NCBI GenBank assembly: GCA_026770705.1
Contig: JANJGN010000034.1
Location: 13,020,001-13,084,000 of the forward strand
Source of the DNA: Isurus oxyrinchus
Lineage: Eukaryota
Length of the DNA stretch: 64,000 nucleotides
Direction: 5' to 3'
The notes beneath the pieces are model-generated. The model saw only the letters and a list, made by a program, of their open reading frames with translations. It ran no database searches and was not told where the DNA came from. A program made the position numbers and the translations under genes. Below, piece by piece: positions 21,940 to 64,000 of the stretch. The first letter of the stretch is position 1. Each line of letters starts with the position of its first letter.

Positions 21940-21987
21940 GGCCTGAACTTGAGTGACCGTCAGCTTTACAGCAATCTGGGGTGGTAA
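21940..21987 (+). CDS. IgV-ITAM receptor, last coding exon (GLNLSDRQLYSNLGW*), completes the ITAM
   Basis: tttttctcattttctacaaag| acceptor; completes YMGL-x7-YSNL; TAA at 21985-21987. Confidence 0.85.
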   Translation, partial: GLNLSDRQLYSNLGW

Positions 21988-33126: not shown

Positions 33127-34545
33127 GAGAGAGAAGAGAGAGAAAAGGGACAGAGAGTAAAAAAGAGACAGAGGGAGAGAGAAAAAAGAGACAGAGGGAG
33201 AGAGAAAAAAGAGACAGAGGGAGAGAGAAAAAAGAGACAGAGGGAGAGAGAAAAAAGAGACAGAGGGAGAGAGAAAAAAGAGACAGAGGGAGAGAGAAAA
33301 AAGAGACANNNNNNNNNNNNNNNNNNNNNNNNNNNNNNNNNNNNNNNNNNNNNNNNNNNNNNNNNNNNNNNNNNNNNNNNNNNNNNNNNNNNNNNNNNNN
33401 NNNNNNNNNNNNNNNNNNNNNNNNNNNNNNNNNNNNNNNNNNNNNNNNNNNNNNNNNNNNNNNNNNNNNNNNNNNNNNNNNNNNNNNNNNNNNNNNNNNN
33501 NCAGAGAGTAAAGAGACAGAGGGAAAGAGAACGAGACAGAGAGAAAAGTGAGAGAGAACAAAGACATTGAGAGAGAAAAAGAGAGAGAGAGAAAAAAGAG
33601 AGAGAAAAAAGAGAGAGAAAAAAGAGACAAAGAGAGAGAAAAAGAGATGGAGAGAGAGAGAGAGAAAGAGACAGAGAGAGAGTAAGAGGCAGACAGAGAG
33701 AGACAAAAGAGACAGAGGGAGAGAGAAAAAAGAGACAGAGAGAGACAGAGAGAGAAATAGATGGACAGAGAGAGAAAAAGAGACAGAGGGAGAGAGAAAA
33801 AGAGACAGAGAGAGAAAAAAGAAACAAAGAGAGTAAAGAAGCAGAGAGAGAAAAAAAGAGATAGGGAGAGAGAGAAAAGGGAACAGAGTAAAGAGGCAGA
33901 GAGAGATGAAAACAGACACAGAGAGAGAAAGAGACAGAGAGAGAAAAAGACAGAAAATAGAGATAGATAGAAAGAAACAGACAGAGAGAGAAAAAGAGAC
34001 ACGTAGAGAAAAAGAGAGAAAATAGAGACAGAGAAAGAAAGAAACAGGCAGAGAGAGAAAAAGACTCAGAGAAAACGAGACAGAGAGAGAGAAAAGGAAG
34101 AGAGGTAGATAAAAAAGAGACAGAGAGAGAAAAAAAGAGAGGGAGAGAAAGAGAGAGAGGAAGAGAAAAAAAGAAACAGAGAGTAAAGAGACAGAGGGAA
34201 AGAGAACGAGACAGAGAGAAAAGTGAGAGAGAACAAAGACATAGAGAGAGAAAAAGAGAGAGAGAGAAAAAAGAGAGAGAAAAAAGAGACAAAGAGAGAG
34301 AAAAAGAGACAGACAGAAAAGGAAACAGAGAGAGAGAAAAGAGATGGAGAGAAAAAAAAGACGGGAAGAGAGAAAAACAGACAGAGAGAGAAAAACAGAT
34401 AGAGAGAGAGAAAAGGCAGAGAGAGAAAAAAAGAGACGGGGAAAAAGACAGAGAGAAAAACAGAGAGAGAGAAAAGGCAGAGAGAGAGAAAGAGAGACAA
34501 AGGGAAAAAGACAGAGAAAGAAAAAAAGACAGGCAGAGAAAAAAT
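33127..34545. repeat. AG-rich low-complexity tract with an N gap
   Basis: Directly visible (agagacagagggagagagaaaaa units). Confidence 0.95.
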
Positions 34546-35071
34546 CAGCTGGGGCTGCGATTCAGGCAATATCTTCACCCTCACACAAACCTCAGAGGCA
34601 AACTTGACATGTTTGTGTTTGAAAAATATACTTTATTCTTAAAATATCTGTAAGATCATTACAAAACACTTCAAAATGGCCATCACAAAAAGGGCAATCA
34701 CATTCCAGTCTTTCCAGAGGCAAACTTCACACACCGATGTACTAAACTCAGGCAATCCACATGCGGAGAGACAGAATGGCTGTCAAACTCACCCTGACAT
34801 ACCTCCAGGTGGGTCAGGCCTCCCAAATCACAGTTCGTCCAATCAGGTGCCAGCTACCTCCACCGCACACACAGGTATGGGGCAGATCAAGGTTGATCTT
34901 GGTGGAATGGGAGGGTGGGGGTAGAGGGGGATGGAGAGGGTAACCTCCAGGCAAATGGTTTAGCCCAGAGCTGTCTCTGTCCTTGTCTGCACTAGTCCCA
35001 AGCCACAGAACCAATGGAATACACAAAGGCTCCAATTTAAAGCGTGATGCCAGCCAGCATATCCTGGGAAC

Positions 35072-35932
35072 AGGTCTGACAGCATCTGTGGAGAGGAAGA
35101 CAGAGTTAACGTTTCGAGTCCTTATGACTCTTCAAGAGCCATACGGACTCGAAAAGTTAACCCTGTCTGAAGAGTCATACGGACTCGAAACGTTAACTCT
35201 ATCTGAAGAGTCATACGGACTCGAAACGTTAACCCTGTCTGGAGAGTCGTACGGACTCAAAACGTTAACTCTGTCTGAAGAGTCATACGGACTTGAAACG
35301 TTAAGCCTGTCTGAAGAGTCATACGGACTCGAAATGTTAACTCTGAAGAGTCATACGGACTCGAAACGTTAACCCTGTCTGAAGAGTCATACGGACTCGA
35401 AATGTTAACCCTGTCTGAAGAGTCATACGGACTCGAAATGTTAACCCTGTCTGAAGAGTCATACGGACTCGAAATGTTAACCCTGTCTGAAGAGTCGTAC
35501 GGACTCGAAACGTTAACTCTGTCTGAAGAGTCATACGGACTTGAAACGTTAAGCCTGTCTGAAGAGTCATACGGACTCGAAATGTTAACTCTGAAGAGTC
35601 ATACGGACTCGAAACGTTAACCCTGTCTGAAGAGTCATATGGACTTGAAATGTTAACCCTGTCGGGAGAGTCATACGGACTTGAAATGTTAACCCTGTCT
35701 GGAGAGTCATACGGACTCGAAACATTAACCCTGTCTGGAGAGTCATACGGACTCGAAACGTTAACTCTGTCTGAAGAGTCATACGGACTCGGAATGTTAA
35801 CCCTGTCTGAAGAGTCATACGGACTCGAAACGTTAACTGTATTCCTCTCCGCAGATGCTGTCAGACCTGCTGAGTTTTTCCAGCTATTTTTGTTTTTGTT
35901 TCAGATTTCCAGCATCCACAGTCTTTTGCTAT
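35072..35932 (+). mobile_element. PLE-derived insertion: short inverted 3' piece, about 20 x 36-bp hammerhead-like units, PLE tail; 12-bp TSD
   Basis: Unit ctgtctgaagagtcatacggactcgaaacgttaacc; tatcctgggaac at 35060-35071 and 35933-35944; tail matches the PLE at 62903-63035. Confidence 0.9.
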
Positions 35933-36249
35933 TATCCTGGGAACGGCCGGTTTCACATTCACTGCTCATTTCAACTGCATGAAAGCAGGTAGCTTGCTTA
36001 CAGCGTGGAGAGGGAGAGATCAGAAATGTTCCACTGAATTTAAACACACGTGCAATGACTCCAATGATTTGAATTACTCCACCCTTGATCAGGCCAGAAG
36101 CTTGGTCAGGTGTAAAGAGAATTCTTCATTTCCTTCAAATCTACTTTATTAGTGAACATTTATCCAAAGTGCATGACATAACCGTTCAAAGCAGACATTA
36201 TAGAAGGGCCAAACCAAAACAGTTCCTTCCCATTCTGTTAGTAACTCAC

Positions 36250-36650
36250 TGCAGAGTAGATCACCCTCTACACTGTCCCAAACACTCCCAGGACAGGGAC
36301 AGCACGCGGTTAGATACAGAGTAAAGCTCCCTCTCCACTGTCCCAAACACTCCCAGGACAGGGACAGCACGCGGTTAGATACAGAGTAAAGCTCCTTCTC
36401 CACTGTCCCAAACACTCCCAGGACAGGTACAGCACGGGGTTAGATACAGAGTAAAGCTCCCTCTACACTGACCCCATCAAACACTCCCAGGACAGGTACA
36501 GCACGGGGTTAGATACAGAGTAAAGCTCCCTCTACACTGTCCCCATCAAACATTCCCAGGACAGGTACAGCACAGGGTTAGATACAGAGTAAAGCTCCCT
36601 CTACACTGTCCCCATCAAACACTCACAGGACAGGGTTAGACAGAGAGTCA
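36250..36650. repeat. 65-69 bp tandem repeat, about 6 copies
   Basis: ctccctctacactgtccccatcaaacactcccaggacaggtacagcacggggttagatacagagtaaag units visible. Confidence 0.92.
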
Positions 36651-37057
36651 CCCTCACTCTGCACTATCCTGTCACTGCAACCCGATATTTGAAATGATAC
36701 AATGCTGCCAGATTGTGGTCATCAACTATTACTGCAGGGACTACATGAAATATCGGCAGGTGTAGGGGGAGGGAATGTGCTTTGTCAAGGAGGGACAGAA
36801 CAAATCTTCAAATTAACCACACACCTCAGGTACAAATCCTTATCACCCTCCTAATAGGGTGTGCCATTCATGAGCTCGGGATAATGCCTTGAAATCAGAA
36901 ACCCTTCCTGTTCAGACACGTTTCTTTGATAGAGGCAAAGGTTACAAAATATTTTATTAAACTCATCTGCCCACTGGTGGAGGGGGCAGACCAGGACAAC
37001 TCCAGTTACTGACAGACTTGTAAAGCAGCAGCTTTCCCACACTGATTATTGGTAATC

Positions 37058-38175
37058 ATAGAAACATAGAAACTAGGAGCAGGAGAAAGCCATTCGGCCC
37101 TTCGAGCCTGCTCCACCATTCATTATGATCATGGATGATCATCCAACTCAATAGCCTGCTCCCTCTTTCTCCCCATACCCTTTGATCCCTTTCGCCCCAA
37201 GAGCTATATCTAACTCCTTCTTGAAAACATACAATGTTTTGGCCTCAACCTCTTTCTGTGGTAACAAATTCCACAGGCTCACCTCTCTCTGGGTGAAGAA
37301 ATTTCGCCTCATCTCGGTCCTAAATGGTCTACCCCATATCTTCAGACTGTGACCCCTGGTTCTGGACTCCCCCACCATCGGGAACATCCTTCCTGCATCT
37401 ACCCTGTCCAGTCCTGTTAGAATTTTATAGGTTTCTATGAGATCCCCCCTCATTCTTCTGAACTCCAGCGAATATAATCCTAATCGACTCAATCTCTTCT
37501 CATATTTCAGTCTCACTATCCCAGGAATCAGTTGGGTAAATCTTCGCTGCACTCCCTCTATAGCAAGAACATCCTTCCTCAGATAAGGAGATCAAAACTG
37601 CACACAATATTCCAAGTGTGGTCTCACCAAGGCCCTGTATAATTGCAGCAAGACATCCCTGCTTCTGTGCTCGAATCATCTCACTATGAAGGCCAACATA
37701 CCATTTGCTTTCTTTACCGCCTGTTGCACCTGCGTGCTTATCTTCAGCAACTGGTGCACGAGGACACCCAGGTCTCGTTGCACATTCCCCTCTCTCAATT
37801 TATAGCCATTCAGATAATAATCTGCCTTCCTGTTTTTGCTACCAAAATGGAGAGCCTCACATTTATCCATTTTATACTGCATCTGCCATGCATTTGCCCA
37901 CTCACTCAGCTTGTCCAAATCACACTGAAGCCATCTCTGCACCCTCCTCACAGCTCACCCTCCCACCCAGCTTTGTGTCATCTGCAAATTTGGAGATACT
38001 ACATTTAGCTCCCTCATCTAAATCATTAATAGACATTGTGAACAGCTGGGGTCCCAGCACCGACCCCTGCGGTACCCCATTAGTCACTGCCTGCCATTCA
38101 GAAAAAAGACCAGTTTATTTCTACTCTTTGTTCTTTGTTTGCCAACCTGTTTTCCATCCATCTCAATATGGATAG
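37058..38175 (-). mobile_element. CR1-clade LINE 3' fragment
   Basis: ORFs 37676-37951 (LQCDLDKLSEWANAWQM) and 37148-37552; catagaaa tail repeat. Confidence 0.93.
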
Positions 38176-39399
38176 GAACCCAGTGTTTTAATTGCAAATT
38201 TGCTGCTCTCCAATTAAACGAGTGACGGAACCGCTTCAATCTTCAAACTTTTATTGCAAGGGAACCAAATGCAAGTGGAATGAGTGCCCCCTCTGTTCTG
38301 TTTGTTTTTATTGGTTTAATGATCAGGATGATTTCTGTGTCCTTGTCACCTCGGTATCCATTCTGTTTACTGGTTGGATGAAATTACTTGCATCGCTTTA
38401 ACATGAGAGGTTGCAACTTTGGCTCAGGCAAATTCTCCTCTCTACGCTTGAGAAGGGTTTTAATGAATTGAGGCAGCCCGACGATTCATTTGTTAACAGG
38501 TCCAGTCACCGTTTGGATTAAATGTACACTTGGTCCCTTTCATGTTGTTTTGATAAATGTCAGAGGAAAGCAATTTCTCGCCACCCCCTCTGCCCCAAGA
38601 AAATATGCTTTATCAAGCAATTTACAAGTTCTGGACTACCCAGCAGCTGTTTAATAATCTCACCTTTTGAAAAGGATATTTTCTGCTCCTGTCATCCAAT
38701 CGTTTTACTGATTTTGTGTTATTATTACTGATAATCATACAATTATATATTAACATATTATTAATACATATTATGATTTGTTTGCTTTCTTAAGTTTTCT
38801 CAATCGCCCTGTGACATCTTCTTAAACAATATAGTGTAAGAATTAGGGTCAACCCCCACCTCCAAAATTCTTATTTCGCCTTTTCTCATCTGAAACACCC
38901 ACAACGTTCACTAAATTGGCGAGAGGGGGATTTCAGATCCAAAGATCCCTCCACGTGAACCATTAGCCGAATTTCAAAAGTTTAACTTTTGAACAGAAAA
39001 ATGAGGAAGTGGTTGGAGTCTGGAACACAGCCTGAGGGAGTGGGAGAGGTAGGGATCCTCACAATGTTTAAGAAGTATTTAGATGAGCGCTTGAAATTCT
39101 ATAGCATCCGGGGCTATGGGCCAAGTGCTGGAAAATGGGATTAGAATAGATAGGTGCTTGATGGCCAGCACAGACATGATGGGCTGAAGGGCCTGCTTCT
39201 GTGCTGTATGACTCTATGACTCTATTGCTAAGTATGGCGAGCTCTGAAACAGGCCATTCTCCAATAAGCCCACAATGGTGTTTATGCTGTGGACATTTTT
39301 TTTTTCATCTTAGCCTATGAATTTACCAGCTTGAAGCTAACACCCTGGCTACAAATGATTGGTTACTCAAATAAAAAAAAACTCTCATTGTGTCCAAAA

Positions 39400-40335
39400 T
39401 GTAGTGTGTTAAGCCTGAAGCAAGCAGCATTCTGGAGACTCATTAGACAAACTGGAGAACTGGCCAACTCGCAAACTTGTGAGAAGGATTCTGAAGCAGA
39501 ATGCCTCATCGCCAGAACTTTCCAACAAGCACCAAGATGTAGCTTGGCTGGTGGTGAGAAAGGCCCTCCCCGTCAGATCCTTCCTAAACCCTGGGAGTCT
39601 CACCCCCTCCACCGCTGCCCTCGAGGTGGCTGTGGTGGGGGAGAGACCGTTGTTCACCTCCTTGTGGAGTGTGCCTTTGTAAAGAAGGTCTGGAGAGAGA
39701 TGCAGTGGTTTCTGTGGAGGTTCATCCTGAGCAGTTCTGTGACACAGGACTCTGTGCTCTACGGGCTGTTCCCAGGGACACACACCGAGACAAACATCAG
39801 CTGCAGCTGGAGGATCATCAACTCGGTGAAAGATGCTCTTTGGTCTGCCCGAAACTTATTGGTCTTCCAACGCAAACAGTTGTCCCTGACCGAGTGTTGC
39901 AGACTGGCACATTCCAAGGTCCAGGACTAGGTGCTGAGGGACGCACTGAAGCTTGGAGCAGCTGCCTCAAAGGTCAGTGGGGGAAAGTTGTTCTCTAAGC
40001 GTGCCATAGTGCACCAAGGGGCTGGGAATTGTATAGACCCCTCGGGCTGTACGACTCACAGTGAATGTAAGTAGTGAATACTAATTGTATTACAATTGTA
40101 TTGAAGCACCTCAGAGTGCAACATGATCTATGTCGATAACTTGAATACCATTGCAACTGTCTGACTGTAATGACCATGTTGAAATGTCTGTAATGTTCAC
40201 TGATTGTATCGAAGCACCTCGTGATCTATGTGGAAAACTGGAATCTGATTGCACTTTTTGTGATGGCCGTTCTGAAATATGTTGTACTGTTCTTTCAGGT
40301 ATTTTATTAATAAAATATACTTTTGCAAAAAAAAA
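39400..40335 (+). mobile_element. Tx1/L1-clade non-LTR element 3' fragment
   Basis: AWLVVRKALP, CPRGGCGGGETVVHLLVECAF..W (C-terminal zinc-knuckle region); AATAAA and A-tail at 40309-40335. Confidence 0.85.
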
Positions 40336-41119
40336 GGATCCTGAAGACAGACAGAAAGAGGAAGCCAGGGTAATAGCACCGCCGTCAAAACGAAACCGTA
40401 AATTCTGCAAAATCTTACTAAAATGAGAAGCAGCATAATCACAATCATATGACTGAAGCTCTGTCATCTATAGCTGTGTCACATGACATGTAAATATTGA
40501 CGTGTATGGCATCATCGCACCATTTCAAAGAGGGGTGGGTGGTGGGGGGGGCGGGGGAGGGGGGGGTGTGGGGGTGGTGCGGGGCGAGTCCTTCCCAGTG
40601 TTCAGGCCAGTGTTTATTCCTCAACCAACATCGCTTGAGCCAGGGGACGCGGTCATTCTCTGGTACTGCTGTCTCTGGGATCTTACTGTGCGCGCAGATC
40701 GGCCGCCGCGATTCCCACGCCGACCCCCACCCACCCCACCCCCACTTCCACCTCATTGGCTGCGAAGCGCTCTGGGGCGTCCTGCGGACGTGAAGGGCGC
40801 TACCGGAATGAAAGCCTCTCCTGTGGCTGATTGATAAATAAGCGAGAGGCGACAAGAACGGACAATGGACAGCCCAAGCTTAGGAAGGAGGCAGTCGCAC
40901 ACTGTGAGGCGCTTGGGTTTATAGCGTCTGCGAAAGCAAAGGGGCGAATTTGATCCAAGTTGCAGAATGCACGTTGCGGACGAGATGGTAAATTCAGAGC
41001 TTGTTCTAACGGTGTAGCTGCGCTGGGCCTCCGAGCTGTTGTGACACATTGGAGCTCCGCACGTATCCCATTGCCTGGAATCATTAGCATGTGAACTGTC
41101 CCGTCCATGCGGCCTGTCT

Positions 41120-41239
41120 CTAGTTAGTACTAACATCCGCGTTCACCGTTGCTTCTCCTTCCCAGTTCTCTCTCCTTGCAGGGTTATCACCATCCACTAC
41201 GTTCAGGTTGAGAGTTGCGTGAACAATAATATGGTTCCG
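41120..41239 (-). CDS. Nectin/PVR-like receptor, exon 8 (RNHIIVHATLNLNVVDGDNPARRENWEGEATVNADVSTN*)
   Basis: ttttgtcaatag| acceptor, phase 0 matching exon 7, TAG at 41122-41120. Confidence 0.8.
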   Translation of the reverse strand, partial: RNHIIVHATLNLNVVDGDNPARRENWEGEATVNADVSTN

Positions 41240-41856
41240 CTATTGACAAAACATGGCACAGTTTGAATGGTCTGAAGAGTGATTTATTTTCTAGTCTTAA
41301 CAGAGTCCACGTGTTCCCCCTCTGCAAGTGGGGAGGGATTTTTTTTAAAAAATAACAACCCACCATTTAACCTTGTTGAACCTGTTGGCACTCACACATT
41401 AAGAGCATTGGCAGTTAAGAGCCAACCACATTCCTGTGAATCTGGAGTCGCACGTAGGCCAGATGGGTACGGAGTCCCTCCCTGAATCTTATAGGTTTTT
41501 ACGACAATCTGTTACCTGCATGACCCATGAGTACTGAGGCTTGCATTTTATTCCACATTTCATTATTTCAGCTGGTGTTCATTGTGTGACAAGAGGAATT
41601 CTCACAATAGGGCTTTCTCAGTTCCTTGGAGAATTGGGCATAGCAATGTGTTAAATCCCATTTCCTCCCGGTTCCCAGTTAATAATAAGTCACTGTTGAG
41701 AGGGCAGGGGAGGCAGCGGCATTGTCACTGGGTCTGGTAGTCCAGTCACTCTGGGCTCCAATACCCTCATGGCAGGAGGTGTTGGAATTCAGTTATAATC
41801 TGGAGACTTACATGGCCATGGAATTATTGCCGATTGTTGTAAAACCCATCTGGATA

Positions 41857-42460
41857 AAGAACAAAGAACAAAGAAAAGTACAGCAGAGGAACAGGCCCTT
41901 CGGCCCTCCAAGCCTGCGCCGATCATATTGCCCGTCAACTAAAATATTTTGCACTTCTGGGGTCCGTATCCCTCTATTCCCATCCTCTTCATGTATTTGT
42001 CAAGTTGCCTCTTAAACACCACTATCGTACCTGCTTCCACCACCTCCCCTGGCAGCGAATTCCAGACACTCACTACCCTCTGCATAAAAAACTCGTCCCG
42101 CACATCTCCTCTATAGTTTTCTCCTCTCACCTTAAATCTATGTCCCCTGCTAATTGACTCTTCCACACTGGGAAAAAGCTTCTGACCATCTACTCTGTCC
42201 ATGCCACTCATAATTTTGTAAACTTCTATCAAGTCGCCCCTCAATCTCCGTCGCTCTAGTGAGAACAATCCGAGTTTCTCCAACCTCTCCTCATAGCTAA
42301 TAACCTCCAGACCAGGCAGCATCCTGGTAAACCTCCTCTGCACCCTCTCCAATGCCTCCATATCCTTCTGGTAATGTGGCGACCAGAATTGCACGCAATA
42401 TTCCAAGTGTGGCCTAACCAAGGTTCTATACAGCTGCATGACTTCCCAGTTTTTATACAC
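41857..42460 (-). mobile_element. CR1 3' fragment inserted into a SINE
   Basis: ORF 41939-42460 (LYRTLVRPHLEYCVQFWSP); the SINE breaks at ccatctgg and resumes at ctggttcactaatg. Confidence 0.92.
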
Positions 42461-42717
42461 AATACTGGTTCACTAATGTCCTTTAGGGAAGGAAATCCGT
42501 ACCTGGTCTGACCTACATGCGACTCCAGACCCACAGCAATGTGGTTGACTCTTAAATGCTCTCTGAACAAGGGTGATTCGGGATGGGCAATAAATGCTGG
42601 CCTACCCAGCGATGCCCACATCCCATGAATGAATATTTTTTTAAAAATCTCTGCTTTGAAATGAAACTAAACTAGCCATGGACATCTCTAGGCCAACACA
42701 TTATCCTTTCAACTTAC

Positions 42718-42752
42718 CTTTTGTGGTGAATGTTTAGCTTTTGATTTGGTGC
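42718..42752 (-). CDS. Nectin/PVR-like receptor, exon 7 (GTKSKAKHSPQK)
   Basis: ttctttttctttattcaaccag| acceptor, AAG|gtaagt donor, 35 nt, phase 1 to 0. Confidence 0.85.
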
Positions 42753-43681
42753 CTGGTTGAATAAAGAAAAAGAATAGAATTAGTTGAGATTCTTTTCCCA
42801 TCACAGAGTCCCATTATTTATTAAAGTGGTTATTCACCATTCAGTCAGCTTTCTTGCTAAATGTACCATAATTGATCCAACGGTCTTGATATTAATTATT
42901 TGGTGAATTATCAGTAAGTCCATTACGTATTGCTCCATATCTACATTAGAAATAGCAGCAGTAGGCCATTCGGCCCCTTGAGCCTGCTCCATCCTTTCAA
43001 TAAGATCATAGCCGATCTGAACTCGACTTTCCTGCCTGTCCACAGCAACATGCACCTGTCCCCCACCGACACCCCTCTGACCTCCACCCCTCCCCCACCA
43101 ACCCTTGACTCCCTTGTCGATCAAAAATCTGTCTAACTCAGCCTTGAATATGTTCAATGACTCAGCCTCCACTGCTCTCTGGTGTAGAGAATCCCAAACA
43201 CTGATGGGAGATGAAATTCCACCGCATCTCCTTCCTAAATGGGAGACCCCCTTATTTTAAAATTGTGCCCCCCACCCCCCCGTTCTAGATTCCCCCATGA
43301 GGGGAAATATCCTCTCAACATCTACCCTATCGAGCCCCCCTCTGAATCTGATATGTTTCAATAAGATCACCTCTCATTCTTCTGAACTCCGATGGGTATT
43401 GGCCCAACCTGCTCCACCTCTCCTCATAAGACCCTTCATCCCAGGAATCAGCTGAGTGAACCCTCTCTGAACTGCCTCCAACGCAAGTCTATCCCTCCTT
43501 AAGTAAGGAGATCAAAATTGCACCCAGTACTCCAGGGGCAGTCTCCCCAATGCCCTGTGCAACTACAGTAAGGCATCCCTACATTTATACTCCATCTCTC
43601 TTGCAATAAAGGCCAACATTCCATTTGCCTCCCTAATTACTTACTGTACCTGCATATTAACTTTTTGTGTAAGTTTTTTTC

Positions 43682-46185
43682 TATTCATTTACGGAATGCG
43701 GGCATTGCTGGCTGGGCCAGTATTTATTGCCCGTCCCTAGTTGCCCTTGAGAAGGCGGTGGTGAGCTGCCTTCTTGACTGGCTGCAGTCCATGTGGTGTA
43801 GGTGCACCCACAATGCTGATAGGGAGGGAGTTCCAGGATTTTGACCCAGTGACAGTGAAGGAACGGCCGATATATTTCCAGCATGGATTTGTTAAAGGAA
43901 GATCTTGCCTCACAAATTTGACTGAATTCTTTGAGGAAGTGACAAGCAGGGTTGATGAAGGTAGTGCAGTGGATGTTGTGTACATGGATTTTAACAAGGC
44001 ATTTGACAAGGTCCCACAAGGCAGATTGGTCAGGAAAGTAAAAGCCCATGGGATTCAGGGTAATGCGACAAACTGGATAAAAGGTTGGCTTTGTAACAGG
44101 AAACAAAGGATAATGGTCGATGGATGCCCTTGCAAATGGAAAGTTATCTCAGGTAGTGTTCCACAGGGCTCAGTGTTGGGACCCTTGCCATCTGCCTTTA
44201 TATATTAACGATTTGGACATGAATGTGGGGGGCATGGTTGGGAAATTTGCAGATGACAAAAAGATTGGCCGAGTAGTGGATAAGACCATAAGACCATAAG
44301 ACATAGGAGCAGAAATTAGGCCATTCAGCCTATTGAGTCTGCTGCACCATTCAATCATGGCAGATAAGTTTCTCAACCCCATTCTCCCACCTTCTCCCCG
44401 TAACCTTTGATCCCCTTACCCATCAAGAACCTATCTATCTCGGTCTTAAATACACTCAATGTCCTGGCCTCCACAGCCTTCTGTGGCAATGAATTCCATA
44501 GATTCACCACTGTTTGACCCTGACCACTGACCGAATTTGAGGTACTTAATCTACTGGGTTTGACCGCCCCCTGTAACAAAGCGTCCAGCTAACTCTCCCC
44601 GTCCCAGATGTGCCACAGCGTCTGGAGCTCGGACTCCAGTTCATCAATTCTGAGCCGGAGTTCCTCCAGCAACCAACATTTGCTGCAGATGTGGTCACTG
44701 CAGCTCGCATTGGGATCTGCCAGCTCCCACATCATACAGCTACCCATCTACCCATGTAAAGGGTAGCCATAATCTCCGAAATGATATAGATAGGTTGGTG
44801 AAGTGCGCAGTAAAGTGGCAGATGGATTTTAACATAGAGAAGTGTGAGGTCATACATTTAGGGAGGTCAAACAGTTACAGGGATTACAAAATAAATGGGA
44901 ATATGCTAAGAGGGGTAGATGAAGTGAGAGATCTTGGCGTACAAGTACACAGGTCCTTTGAAGGCAGTTCATGTAAAGAAGGCATATGGAATGCTCTCCT
45001 TCATTGCCAGAGGTATAGAATATAAAAGTAAGGATATAATGTTGGAATTGTATAAAACACTGGTGAGGCCACAACTGGAGTATTGTGCGCAGTTCTGGTC
45101 ACCACATTACAGGAAGGATGTAATAACTCTGGAGAGAGTGCAGAGGAGGTTTGCAAGAATGTTGCCAGGGTTAGAAAAGTGTAGCTACGAGGAGAGATTG
45201 GATAGGTTGAGGTTATTTTCCTTAGAACAAAGAAGGCTGAGAGGTGACTTGATCGAGATGTACAAAATGATGAGGGGAATAGATAGAGTGGACAGGATAA
45301 AATTGTTTCCCTTGATGGAGAATTCTAGAACCAGGGGACATAGATTCAAGATAAGTGGCACAAGATGTAAGGGGGACATGAGGAAGAATTCTTTTACACA
45401 GAGGATAGTGGGTGGCTGGAATTCACTGCCCAAGTTGGTGGTCGAGGCAGAAACTCTAAACTCTTTTAAAAAGTACCAGGAGCTGCACCAAAAGTGCTGT
45501 AAGCTGCAGAGCTATGGGCTAGGGGCAGGAAGGTGGGATTAGAAAGGGCACCTGGGTGTCCTCGGGCTGGCATGGACAAGATGGGCCGAATGGCCCTTCT
45601 GTGCTGCAACATTTCTATGGTTCTATGGTTCTAAGTCAGGATGGTGAGTGACTTGGAGGGGAACTTCCAGGTGGTGGTGTTCTCATGTGTCTGCTGCCCT
45701 TGTCCTTCTAGATGGTAGGGGTTGTGGGTTTGGAAGGTGCTGTCAAAGGAGCCTTGGTGAATTCCTATAGTGCATCTTATAGATGGTACATACTGCTGCT
45801 ACTGTGCGTCGGTGGTGGAGGGAGTGAATGTGATGCCAATCAAGCGGGCTGCTTTGTCCTGGATGGTGTCGAGCTTCTTGAGTGTTGTGGGAGCTGCACT
45901 CATCCAGGCAAGTAGGGAGTATTCCATCACTCTCCTGACTTGTGCCTTGTAGATGGTGGACAGGCTTTGGGGAGTCAGGAGGTGAGTTACTTGCCGCAGG
46001 ATTCCCAGCCTCTGACCTGCAGCCATAGCTGCAGTATTTATATGGAGAGTGCAGTTCAGTTTCTAGTCATCCTGCAGGATGTTGATATTGGGGGATTCAG
46101 TGATGGTAATGCCATTGAACGTCAAGGGGCGATGGTTGGATTCTCTCTTGTTGGGGATGGTCATTGCCTGGCACTTGTGTGGCGA
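43682..46185. mobile_element. Nested LINE cluster: minus-strand LINE (43682-43880, 45634-46185) split by a plus-strand CR1 (43881-45632) that contains further CR1 pieces
   Basis: QHGFVKGRSCLTNL, VYMDFNKAFDKV, VPQGSVLGP and ORF 44934-45542; the host element resumes in register (atatatttcca...agtcaggatgg). Confidence 0.88.
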
Positions 46186-49371: not shown

Positions 49372-49729
49372 CTAACCAGAGAAAACAAAATGTCAAAAAG
49401 CGATCAGTGAGCTCTTTTCCATACTGCTAATTTAGAATAAAATATAATAATGCAGAACTGCAAATGATAGGTATTTGCCCCAGTATATTTCCCAACCCAT
49501 AAATAGAATTCTAGTCAATTAAACTCCTTAATTGTTGTGTTGCTGCACAGTTTATAATGGCGGAAATAGACAATCCTTCATTCAGTTGTATGTGTTTTTT
49601 AGGTAAAATAAAGAACACATGGATTAACAATAATTGAGACACTTAGTTATTTTTCTTTAAAACAAAGATATGAAGGCAATCAACTGTCATGTCTCTCAGA
49701 GAAACAACTGCAGTTTCAGAGTCCACGCA

Positions 49730-50540
49730 CCATTCACCCACCCAAATACCCACCAATCCACCCAACCACCAATCCACCCACCCACCAATCCACTCACTCG
49801 CCGACCCAAATTCCCACTCACCCACCCACCCAGCAATCCACCCACCCAAATACCCACTCACCCACCCACCCACCAACCCACCCAAATACCCATTCACCCA
49901 CCCAACCACCAATCCACCCACCCAAATACCCACTCACCCACCCAAATACCCACTCACCCACCCACCCAAATACCCACTCACCCACCCACCCACCTACCCA
50001 CTCACCCACCCAACCACCAGTCCACTCACCCAAATACCCAAACACCTACCCACCAACCCACCAATCCACCCACCCACCAATGCACCCACCCACCCACAAA
50101 CCAATCCACCCACCAACCCACCAATCCACCCACCCACCAATCCACCCACCCACCAATCCACCCACCCAAATACCCACTCACCCACCCACTAACCCACCAA
50201 TCCACCCACCCACCAATCCACCCACCCAAATACCCACTCACCCATCAATCCACCCACCCACCAATCCACCCACCCACCCACCAATTTACCCACTCACCAA
50301 TCTACCCACCCAGCCACCCACCAATCCACCCACCCAAATACCCACCCACTAATCCGCCCACCCACCCAAATATCTGGCAATCCACCCACCCAAATACCCA
50401 CGCCCCCCACTCACCAATCCATCCACTCAAATACCCACCCACCCAAATATCCACCCACTCACCATCCACCCACCCACCAACCCATCCACCCATCCATCCT
50501 CCCACCCATGCACCCATCTATCCACCTACCCACCAATCCA
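49730..50540. repeat. (CCAC/CCAAT)-rich low-complexity tract, intronic
   Basis: Directly visible. Confidence 0.93.
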
Positions 50541-50664
50541 TGTTATCATACTCATTGTTGGCCTGTGGTTATATAAATGATTCAACAACGCAGTTCATGT
50601 ATTAATCAGGCAGTTTCAGTTGGGTTTTTTTTTTCTCAGAATAACTTCCTCCTCTGATACTTAC

Positions 50665-54837: not shown

Positions 54838-56795
54838 CCCCACGGAACTCATTTCTCGTTATCTTGACTCCCTTCTCTCTCCCCTTGTCCAGTCCCTTCC
54901 CACCTACATCAGTGATTCCTCTGACACCTTACGTCACATCAACAATTTCCAATTCCCTGGCCCCAACCGCCTTCTCTTCACCATGGACGTCCAATCCCTC
55001 TACACCTCCATCCCCCACCAGGATGGTCTGAGGGCCCTTAGCTTCTTCCTCGAACAGAGGCCCGAACAATCCCCATCCACCACCAATTTCCCCCGTCTGG
55101 CTGAACTTGTTCTCTCATTGAACACCTTCCTTAAACTAGTCCCACTTCCTCCAAATAAAAGATGTGGCTACGGTTACCCGCATGGGCCCCAGCTATGCCT
55201 GTCTCTTTATGGGGTATGTGGAACATTCCTTGTTCCAGTCCTACTCTGGCCCCCTCCCACAACTCTTTCTCCGGTACATCGATGATTATTTCGGTGCCGC
55301 TTCATGCTCTCGTCGGGACCTGGAAAAATGTATTAATTTTGCTTCCAATCTCCACCCCTCCATCATTTTCACATGGTCCATCTCTGACACTTCCCTTCCC
55401 TTCCTTGACCTCTCTGTCTCAATCTCTGGTGATAGACTGTCCACCAATATCCATTACAAGCCTACTGACTCCCACAGCTACCTCGACTACAGCTCCCTAC
55501 ACCCCACTTCCTGTAAGGACTCCATCCCATTCTCTCAGTTCCTTCACCTCCGTCGCATCTGTTCTGATGATATAACCTTCAAAAACAGTTCCTCTGACAT
55601 GTCCTCCTTCTTCCTTAACTGAGGTTTTCCACCCACGGTCGTTGACAGGGCCCTCAACTGTGTCCGGCCCATCTCCCGCGCATTCGCCCTCACGCCTTCT
55701 CCTCCCTCCCAGAAACATGATAGGGTCCCCCTTGTCCTCACTTATCACCCCACCAGCCTCCGTTTTCAAAGGATCATCCTCCGCCATTTCCGCCAACTCC
55801 AGCATGATGCCACCACCAAACACATCTTCCCTTCACCCCCCCCTAGTGGCATTCCATAGGGATCGCTCCCTCCGGGACACCCTGGTCCATTCCTTTATCA
55901 CCCCCTACTCCTCCTCCCACGGCATCTTCCTATGCAAATGCAGAAGATGCAACACCTGCCCCTTCAATTCCTCTCTCCTCACCGTCCAAGGGCCCAAATA
56001 CTTCTTTCAAGTGAAGCAGCATTTCACTTGCATTTCCCCCAACTTAGTCTACTGCATTCATTGCTCCCAATGTGGTTTCCTCTACATTGGAGAGATCAAA
56101 CGTGGACTGGGTGACCGCTTTGCAGAACACCATTGGTCTGTCTGCAAGAATGACCCAGACCTCCCTGTCGCTTGCCATTTCAACACTCCACCCTGCTCTC
56201 TTGCCCACATGTCTGTCCTTGGCTTGCTGCATTGTTCCAGTGAAGCTCAACGCAAACTGGAGGAACAACACCTCATCTTCTGACTAAACACTTTACAGCC
56301 TTCCGGACTGAATATTGAGTTCAACAATTTTAGGTCTCGAACTCTCTCCTCCATCCCCACCCCCTTCCCATTTCTTCCCCCTTCCTTTTTGTTTTTTCCA
56401 ATAGTTTATATAGATTTTTTTCTTTTCCCACCTATTTCCATTATTTTAAATGTATTTCCACCATTGTTTATTTCTACCTTTTAGTATTCCCCCACCCCCA
56501 CTAGAGCTATCTGTACCTAATTAGCATATTCCTTTAGACAATATCACCAGCTTCAACACCTCTGTTCTTTTGTCTGTGACAGCTTTTGGTTATCTCCACC
56601 TATCACTGACTGCTTGTCCCAACAAACCCCCCCCCCCCCACCCCCCTTAAACCAGTTTATATTTCACCCCTTTCTTAATTTTACTTAGTTCCGTAGAAGG
56701 GTCATGAGTACATGAAACTTCAACTGTACTCTTTGCCGCTGATGCTGCCATATCTGCTGAGTTTTTCCAGGTACTTCTGTTTCTGTTTTTGTTAT
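54838..56795 (+). mobile_element. 5'-truncated, frameshifted PLE in intron 1 of the nectin-like gene
   Basis: MDVQSLYTSIP, FLRYIDDYF and LVYCIHC..YIGE in broken frames; PLE 3' tail. Confidence 0.93.
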
Positions 56796-62902: not shown

Positions 62903-64000
62903 TAAAAGCAAAATACTGCGGGTGCTGGAAATCTGAAACAAAAACAAAAATACCTGGAAAAACTCAACAGGTCTGACAGCATCTGTGGAGAGGGATACAG
63001 TTGACATTTCGAGTCTGTATGACTCTTCAAAAGAACTGAGCAAATTGAGAAATGAGGTGAAATATAAGCTGGTAGAGGGGCGTGGGACAGGTAGAGCTAG
63101 ATAGGGGGCCAGTGTTAGGTAGAGGCCGAGAAGAGATTGCCAAAGATGTCATAGACAAAAGGAGTGTTGACGGTGGCGATATTACATAAGGAATGTGCTA
63201 ATGGGGACATTAAGGGTAGCAAGCAGGACAAGCTAGTGGCAGATGGTCCTAACGGGGGTGGGGTGGAGGGAATGGACTGAAATGGGCTAAAAGGTGGAGA
63301 TAAAACAATAGATCAAAATAAATTTTGAAATAGGTGGGAAAAGAAAAATATATTTTGTTAAAAATGATAAATTATTGGAAAAAGGGGGATCAGACAGGGG
63401 GTGGGGATAGAGGAGAGAGATCATGGCCTAAAACTGTTGAACTCAATATTAAGTCCAGAAGGCTGTAAAGTGCCGAGTTGGAAGATGAGGTGTTGTTCCT
63501 CCAGTTTGCGTTGGGCTTCACTGGAACATTGCAGCAGGCCAAGGACAGACATGTGGGCGTGAGAGCAGGGTGGGGTGTTGAAATGGCAAGTGACAGGGAG
63601 GTCTGGGTCATGCTTGCAGACGGACCAAAAGTGTTCTGCAAAGCGGTCACCCAGTCTGCGTTTGGTCTCTCCAATGTAGAGGAGACCGCATTGGGAGCAA
63701 CGAATGCAGTAGACCAAATTGAGGGAAGTGCAAGTGAAATGCTGCTTCACTTGAAAGGAGTGTTTGGGCCCTTGGACGTTGAGGAGGGAGGAAGTAAAGG
63801 GGCAGGTGTTGCATCTTCTGCGGTTGCATGGGAAGGTGCTGTGGGAGGGGGTTGAGGTGTAGGGCATGATGGAGAGTGGACCAGGGTGTCCCGGAGGCAA
63901 CAATCCCTGCAGAAAGCTGCCAGGTGGGGGGAGGGGGGTGTGAAGGGAAGATGTGTTTGGTGGTGGCATCATGCTGGAGTTGGCGGAAATGGCGGAGGAT
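62903..64000 (-). mobile_element. PLE of a second subfamily (GIY-YIG plus 3' UTR), continuing beyond the window
   Basis: ORF 63421-63972 (NLVYCIRCSQCGLLYIGET); 3' UTR differs from the 26-30 kb copies. Confidence 0.93.

Follow-up and report, generated by a model that had tools for sequence, protein, structure and literature searches.

An eight-exon gene on the minus strand of the window (the whole 64,000-nt stretch of Isurus oxyrinchus DNA analyzed here) encodes a nectin-like protein whose last exon is laid out as an ITIM followed by an ITSM, with histidine and asparagine where the two tyrosines would stand. We consider it likely that the gene represents an elasmobranch-wide nectin/PVR-like type I protein that inherited an ITIM/ITSM exon, lost its tyrosines early and repeatedly, and is not a classical inhibitory receptor but serves a ligand or adhesion role.

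Homology searches were run with single exons, and the upstream exons were located via six-frame reading and Pfam searches of single exons; the joined model served for checking the frame, for aligning locally, and in the tree and rate work. When the eight exons were joined in a script, AG/GT was found at every border, and the resulting 1245 nt translated into 414 amino acids followed by TAG, with no internal stop (Table 1). The protein has a type I architecture, with a signal peptide, a V-set domain, two C-type Ig domains, and a single transmembrane (TM) segment, after which the cytoplasmic part (AKKRRKIEGTKSKAKHSPQKRNHIIVHATLNLNVVDGDNPARRENWEGEATVNADVSTN) contains no tyrosine. The window model shares 96% identity with XP_041032811.1 of Carcharodon carcharias, in keeping with a close lamnid relationship of the two sharks; the Carcharodon tail has the sequence ...KKRRKIEGTKSKAKHSPQKRNHIIVHATL... 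Between exons 3 and 4, the intron contains a long low-complexity array (49643-50605) with ORFs of at most 311 aa that consist of PTHPPT or GWVGG repeats on two strands and do not constitute a gene.

Table 1. Features of the nectin-like gene in the window, in window coordinates (a slash marks the exon-intron border).
Feature	Position	Strand	Description
Exon 1	57774-57726	minus	ATG and signal peptide (MSSVNLAWFVQLALCT); phase-1 donor CAG/gtaggt; tblastn 100% to Carcharodon P0187 residues 1-16
Exon 2	52623-52276	minus	Ig V domain; Pfam V-set 4.8e-15; nearest solved chain nectin-1 D1, 2e-21
Exon 3	50958-50665	minus	Second Ig domain, CD80-like C2-set; Pfam C2-set_2 5.1e-18; 100% to Carcharodon P0187 residues 133-230
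Exon 4	49371-49254	minus	Third Ig domain, first half; Pfam Ig_3; phase-2 donor AAT/gtatgt
Exon 5	47577-47411	minus	Third Ig domain, second half, and stalk; Pfam I-set/Ig_3, C-terminal halves
Exon 6	47231-47118	minus	Transmembrane segment, then stop-transfer sequence KKRRKIE; phase 1 at both borders
Exon 7	42752-42718	minus	35-nt micro-exon, (G)TKSKAKHSPQK; phase 1 to phase 0
Exon 8	41239-41120	minus	Terminal coding exon RNHIIVHATLNLNVVDGDNPARRENWEGEATVNADVSTN, then stop; ITIM/ITSM-derived, no Tyr
Site 1, ITIM tyrosine position	41221-41219	minus	CAC = His, within IVHATL
Site 2, ITSM tyrosine position	41143-41141	minus	AAC = Asn, within TVNADV
Stop codon	41122-41120	minus	TAG
Probable 3' UTR	40620-41119	minus	AATAAA-like signal near 40620; intron in NCBI lamniform models
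Alternative terminal exon of NCBI models	35085-34960	minus	Carcharodon and Cetorhinus (451 aa); tblastn 85-88% identity

The intron that separates exon 6 from the last exon has 11 open 35-nt candidates bounded by AG and GT, and exon 7 as listed is the only one with a good long pyrimidine tract and donor (ttcaaccag/GCACC...AAAAG/gtaagt). The other 10 candidates were dropped because they lack the pyrimidine tract or a proper donor, or because they lie inside repeat-derived ORFs. Since exon 7 exits in phase 0, the frame of the last exon is fixed. The joins of exons 6, 7, and 8 and their frame are identical in 18 independently annotated orthologues, and the exon-7 segment followed by an in-frame tail exon is present in every annotated orthologue. 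The proposal in the preliminary description of this locus, that a 35-nt exon 7 sets the frame of the last exon, is thus borne out. The same intron also carries RT-like ORFs (LINE debris) at 41939-42460 (minus), 43774-44208 (plus), and 44934-45542 (plus); similar RT-like fragments occur at 55164-56283 and 63421-63972.

The terminal exon begins after the acceptor tcaatag at 41240 with CGG AAC CAT ATT ATT GTT CAC GCA ACT CTC and ends with ACG GTG AAC GCG GAT GTT AGT ACT AAC TAG. An ITIM is defined as (I/L/V/S)xYxx(L/V) and an ITSM as TxYxx(V/I) (PMC2832619). IVHATL departs from the former by a histidine at the required tyrosine, with the remaining motif positions fitting, and TVNADV departs from the latter by an asparagine at the required tyrosine, with T at -2 and V at +3 in place. 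These two motifs with their CAC and AAC codons, the tail without tyrosine, and the intact 414-aa ORF had all been described before, and we confirmed each of them in the window sequence. A second, Tyr-bearing tail cassette was not found in the window by tblastn with paralogue and orthologue tails or by a six-frame motif scan: only the terminal exon itself matched, and the motif-scan hits were low-complexity repeats. Features of an activating receptor are absent as well, there being no charged residue in the TM segment (STLVYIVLGTVVGTLLIAVFLAVVIA), no ITAM, and no YxxL/I pair in the tail.

Next, we considered the 3' end of the gene. The NCBI models of Carcharodon and Cetorhinus use an internal donor (GAT/gttagt, after 41135) to join exon 8 to an alternative terminal exon. 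This variant retains IVHATL and TVNAD, swaps the last four codons only, and adds one non-motif tyrosine. The acceptor of the alternative exon (tcttcctctccacag followed by ATG) lies at the lower edge of an array (35062-35949) of at least ~19 tandem copies of a 36-nt unit; an Rfam scan of 34000-43000 returned no family at the gathering score. Like the window, 16/16 non-lamniform orthologues have a short C-terminus behind the second motif. Three residues follow AD[VIL] in 14 of these 16; Heterodontus is extended by a stop loss, and the motif of Narcine is degraded. Small sequencing runs of three studies, guessed to be RNA (49-116 million letters), contain a fraction of 0.37-0.79 of the words sampled from 40620-41260, mainly words downstream of the stop codon. 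A run of this size would scarcely suffice to cover a single-copy locus as DNA, hence I. oxyrinchus probably has an mRNA in which exon 8 is terminal and a 3' UTR follows. Transcript-sized assemblies of 1.3-1.5 kb from skates encode the same tail. No tail-exon swap was seen among the annotated isoforms of the orthologues (P0195, P0009, P0163, P0178). As to other isoforms, the TM exon is skipped in Pristiophorus X3, possibly giving a soluble form, and the second Ig exon is skipped in Narcine X2, Hemitrygon X3, and Hemiscyllium X2.

The exon domains agree with the earlier assignment to the nectin/PVR-like receptors, as seen in the V-set domain, the CD80-like C2-set domain, the split third Ig domain, the TM exon, and the nearest solved V domains. 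Nectin-1 leads the latter (Table 1), followed by nectin-2, nectin-3, CD226, nectin-4, and PVR (2.4e-8). The interface of nectin/PVR V domains is marked by the motifs (V/I)(S/T)Q, AX6G, and T(F/Y)P, and exon 2 carries VVQVTW, AVYNPFFG, and VFPTG at the corresponding positions. AVYNPFFG matches AX6G; VVQ aligns to ITQ and VFP to TFP of nectin-1, neither being an exact consensus. We also modeled a V-V complex that paired the Cetorhinus orthologue with the ITIM paralogue of the same species. The model scored 0.67 against 0.00 for the best control, a mark reached by 51/78 solved complexes and 2/108 mismatched pairs, and the runs agreed in at least 88% of contacts, with a partner pLDDT of at least 82. 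The predicted interface lies on the canonical CC'C''FG face, and its segments (VVQVTW, AVYNPFFGTSYP, and EVNVFPTGKH) are those of the canonical nectin/TIGIT-PVR interface. Such a pass would speak for family likeness only, as it cannot tell which member binds and may echo memorized solved nectin complexes.

Two known proteins invite comparison. The NCBI name derives from nectin-1 (PVRL1), whose V domain is the solved one that matches the shark V domain best, with the interface positions aligned, but the shark gene falls outside nectin-1 in the tree, nearer to nectin-2/PVR-like proteins. Unlike the long tail of nectin-1, the shark tail has 59 aa and lacks the afadin/PDZ-binding motif E/A-x-Y-V: it ends in ...ADVSTN, and the orthologues end in NVN, NIN, SID, HID, or HIN. 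In mammalian PVR/CD155 (Necl-5), a nectin-type V-C-C ectodomain is followed by a short tail in which an ITIM replaces the PDZ/afadin motif; this protein has been reported in placental mammals only, in a survey that makes no mention of shark ITIM nectin-likes (PMC7286890). PVR/CD155 and the shark gene are not orthologous. PVR keeps its tyrosine, and the shark V domain is closer to nectin-1.

To place the gene among its relatives, we collected homologues by phmmer with the V exon and by two profile/word searches; a cluster look-up added Carcharodon XP_041032811.1. The searches yielded, for each elasmobranch species, one protein of ~410-425 aa that NCBI calls 'nectin-1-like' or 'poliovirus receptor-like'. 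In a tree of 35 proteins (LG+C20+F+G4), an elasmobranch orthogroup of 19 sequences, including the window, received a support of 100/99 and followed the species tree (rays versus sharks), with the window protein grouping with Carcharodon and Cetorhinus. Its members share the 35-nt-exon segment and an ATLNL...EATVxAD tail. The sister clade of this orthogroup (100/99) consists of shark nectin-like ITIM/ITSM genes and their ITAM partners, and the two clades together are sister to nectin-2/PVR-like proteins (100/98).

Paralogues of the sister clade that carry an ITIM and an ITSM (e.g. Cetorhinus P0214 and Hemiscyllium XP_060708648.1, the latter being P0210) have the same V-C-C-TM layout as the window gene and a homologous terminal exon, which reads IVYATLDLNVL...STVYADV in Cetorhinus and IIYASLDLNVL...LTVYADI in Rhincodon, versus IVHATLNLNVV...EATVNADV in the window. 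Both tyrosines were retained in 9/9 of these paralogue sequences, from seven shark species. Paralogue and orthologue reside on equal-sized contigs, which we took to be the same contig, in Cetorhinus, Hemiscyllium, Rhincodon, Stegostoma, Heterodontus, and S. canicula. In the tree, paralogues with an ITIM/ITSM and with an ITAM group according to species, not tail type (Hemiscyllium and Pristiophorus; P0183/P0210 and P0179/P0181): their ectodomains evolve in concert. By contrast with the paralogue, whose ectodomain is homogenized with that of its ITAM partner, the window gene is without such a partner and evolves along the species tree; orthologue and inhibitory paralogue are 38.6% identical overall. 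Elsewhere in the window, a short segment at 21940-21978 (plus; GLNLSDRQLYSNL) looks like the latter half of the ITAM found in the activating nectin-like paralogues of sharks (GLNLGEQAVYSEL).

In a single comparison, the window tail exon shared 17/32 aligned residues with the C-terminal end of the paralogue from Cetorhinus (E = 1e-4), His standing opposite the ITIM tyrosine (IVYATL) and Asn opposite the ITSM tyrosine (TVYADV). Against the Heptranchias orthologue there were 23/38 identities (E = 1e-12), and a tyrosine stood opposite at both sites. Judged by these alignments, the tail exon truly descends from an exon with an ITIM followed by an ITSM. The ITIM-then-ITSM order that the preliminary description had obtained by restoring the tyrosines on paper occurs in both of these relatives, which have a tyrosine at each position. 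A search for tyrosine among relatives was likewise positive: besides the paralogues and Heptranchias, two skates carry it at site 2, so it cannot be said that relatives never possess it.

We then followed the two sites through the orthogroup (Table 2). At site 1, Phe is found in 11 sequences, His in 5, Leu in 2, and Tyr in 1; at site 2, Asn in 9, Tyr, His, and Val in 3 each, and Cys in 1. Heptranchias is the only one of the 19 orthologues to keep both tyrosines, and Asn at site 2 is common to all four galeomorph shark orders. Except for Leu and Val, all replacements are one-step neighbors of Tyr codons.

Table 2. Residues at the two tyrosine positions across the orthogroup.
Sequences	Site 1/site 2	Remark
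Window, Carcharodon, Cetorhinus (lamniforms)	H/N	
Both catsharks (Scyliorhinus)	F/N	
Rhincodon, Hemiscyllium, Stegostoma, Chiloscyllium (carpet sharks)	F/N	
Heterodontus (bullhead shark)	F/N	
Pristiophorus	F/H	
Heptranchias	Y/Y	
Pristis	F/H	
Hemitrygon, Hypanus	F/V	
Mobula	L/V	
Narcine	L/H	Second motif degraded (TEHSET)
Rhinoraja	F/C	
Amblyraja, Leucoraja (skates)	H/Y	

At least five changes are required at each tyrosine site within the orthogroup. Under Sankoff parsimony, with the paralogues as a Tyr outgroup, the ancestor of the orthogroup is reconstructed most cheaply with Phe at site 1. The tyrosine of Heptranchias would then be a reversal, and the histidines of lamniforms and skates, which are two nucleotide steps away from Phe, would have come later. 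For site 2 the reconstruction gives an ancestral His or Tyr, with Asn gained on the stem of the galeomorph sharks. Because Phe is cheapest at site 1, the lamniform histidine most parsimoniously replaced Phe rather than Tyr, and a single base change from TAC, on this reconstruction, is probably not the real route to it. The two separate substitutions of the preliminary description therefore stand as separate events, but not as recent events in this genome, nor, at site 1, as a one-base path from TAC. Recent gene conversion from the paralogue was considered as the source of the tyrosines in Heptranchias and rejected, as the tail of this species is orthologue-like (ATLNLNVLDGANS...ADININ). Sharks and rays split very roughly 250-300 million years ago. 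Tyrosine loss is ancient, recurrent, and common to nearly all sharks and rays, and was possibly selected.

The residues around the two sites behave differently from the sites themselves. In the 19-sequence alignment A383, T384, and T406 are invariant and V381, L385, N386, L387, D391, E404, A405, V407, A409, and D410 nearly so, whereas the two tyrosine columns are among the more variable ones of the last exon. Relative rates, estimated on one fixed topology with proportional partitions, were 3.21 for the signal peptide, 0.95 for the IgV domain, 0.84 and 0.70 for the second and third Ig domains, 1.16 for the TM exon, 1.51 for exon 7, and 1.00 for the last exon. With its flanks nearly invariant and its last exon as slow as the V domain, the tail still seems functional; an unconstrained tail would not be expected to evolve at the rate of the V domain across rays and sharks. 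Variable columns amid conserved neighbors are not confined to the tail, as 7 were found among 404 tested and 6 of them lie in Ig domains; the unusual point is that in the tail the variable residue is the motif-defining one. Among the lamniforms, differences are more frequent in the last exon than in the ectodomain by a factor of 2.5-3.5 (3/36 versus 7/310, p = 0.07; 6/36 versus 20/310, p = 0.04), which could reflect recent relaxation.

Four other explanations for the tail were weighed against this reading. The closest to the preliminary description is that two changes from TAC turned a functional inhibitory receptor into a signaling-dead decoy, and did so recently, in this genome or species. 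Both codons are indeed one base from TAC, and the restored motifs are exactly those of the Cetorhinus paralogue. Yet the His/Asn pair is common to Carcharodon and Cetorhinus, the asparagine extends to catsharks, carpet sharks, and the bullhead shark, most species have Phe at site 1, and parsimony sets Phe before His; moreover, the ectodomain is only 38.6% identical to that of the inhibitory paralogue, and the tail flanks are conserved. We therefore regard a recent conversion as highly improbable. The opposite view, that the motifs never held tyrosine and resemble an ITIM and an ITSM by chance, might draw on the scarcity of tyrosine among the orthologues and on the parsimony result, which permits Phe (site 1) or His (site 2) in the orthogroup ancestor. 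It strikes us as extremely improbable, given that every sequence of the sister paralogue has a tyrosine at both aligned positions, that the exon-level alignments are significant (1e-4 and 1e-12), and that the replacements other than Leu and Val are one codon step from Tyr.

The tail as read might also never be made, if the gene model is wrong at its 3' end and the real protein ends in another exon, as the spliced NCBI models of Carcharodon and Cetorhinus could be taken to indicate. However, the variant that they describe still carries IVHATL and TVNAD and differs in the last four codons alone, its extra exon has an acceptor at the edge of a tandem repeat, all 16 non-lamniform orthologues end shortly after the second motif like the window, and the presumed RNA runs hold sequence past the stop codon, as fits an unspliced 3' UTR; a wrong 3' end is thus very unlikely to account for the tail. 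Lastly, the gene might work through its ectodomain only, with the cytoplasmic exon drifting as a neutral relic. Freely varying tyrosine positions, the faster divergence of the last exon than of the ectodomain within lamniforms, and the degraded second motif of Narcine (TEHSET) would all fit drift. By contrast, across rays and sharks the last exon is no faster than the V domain, 11 motif-flank columns are invariant or nearly so, and exon loss or truncation was seen in none of the orthologues, hence we hold a neutral relic to be quite unlikely. The same near-invariant flanks and the rate of 1.00 against 0.95 for the IgV domain argue for a retained tail function, and the label 'signaling-dead' given to the tail in the preliminary description is unproven.

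For the preferred reading, that of an inherited ITIM/ITSM exon that lost its tyrosines early and repeatedly, we postulate the following course. The gene would have been born by duplication from an ancestor common to the linked ITIM/ITSM and ITAM nectin-like receptor pair, and would have inherited from that ancestor the ITIM-then-ITSM terminal exon, in which both phosphorylatable tyrosines were then replaced, early and repeatedly. A tail without tyrosine should not be phosphorylated by Src-family kinases and should not recruit SHP-1/2 through their SH2 domains, in which case the protein would not be a classical inhibitory receptor. We infer that it most likely acts via its conserved nectin-type V-domain face as a ligand or adhesion partner of family members, while the tail may retain some phosphotyrosine-independent function that keeps the flanks constant. 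A decoy of the same specificity was rejected, as the ectodomain is only ~39% identical to that of the inhibitory paralogue. Heptranchias, with both tyrosines, and the two skates with a site 2 tyrosine may still signal, so the function of the protein may differ between species.

A more specific, speculative version is that the Tyr-less flanks form a phosphorylation-independent docking site, for example one read at T(-2) and V/I(+3) by an SH2 adaptor of the SAP/EAT-2 type, or an unswitchable SH2 sink, with the protein serving as a constitutive ligand or cis-partner of the neighboring ITIM/ITAM receptors and the repeated replacement of tyrosine having been selected rather than tolerated. We think this unlikely as a whole. 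The SH2 domain of SAP binds both phosphorylated and non-phosphorylated ITSM ligand peptides (PMC3507883). The T at -2 and the V/I at +3 of the TxYxx(V/I) motif through which SAP (SH2D1A) engages SLAM-family receptors are also kept in the shark tail; however, SAP ligand peptides still contain the tyrosine that the shark tail has lost, hence the likeness is one of analogy only. CEACAM1-L offers another parallel: one exon encodes an ITIM and, ~20-25 residues on and near the C-terminus, an ITSM, and the CEACAM family has also spawned activating and non-signaling members (PMC2832619). The ectodomain families are unrelated, though, and the tyrosines of CEACAM1 are conserved, whereas the corresponding positions of the shark tail are variable.

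The gene itself is already predicted in the public annotation of related species. In the searchable literature we found no description of shark nectin-like ITIM receptors, of an ITIM/ITAM cluster, or of conserved ITIM/ITSM tails without tyrosine, and a Tyr-less ITIM/ITSM-derived tail with conserved flanks across almost all elasmobranchs, beside a sister gene that keeps its tyrosines, appears to be undescribed. Tyrosines define inhibitory immune receptors and are normally the best-conserved residues of their tails. In this shark and ray gene the pattern is reversed: the tyrosine positions turn over (F, H, L, and Y at site 1; N, H, V, C, and Y at site 2), and the surrounding motif is fixed. The series from Tyr/Tyr in Heptranchias through His/Tyr in skates and Phe/Asn in most sharks to His/Asn in lamnids is a natural one for studying what the flanks do without phosphorylation. 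With this gene, the ITIM/ITAM cluster of shark nectin-like receptors would gain a third member that is not switchable, and the picture of a fresh two-hit inactivation would have to be replaced by one of ancient, recurrent, and possibly selected loss.
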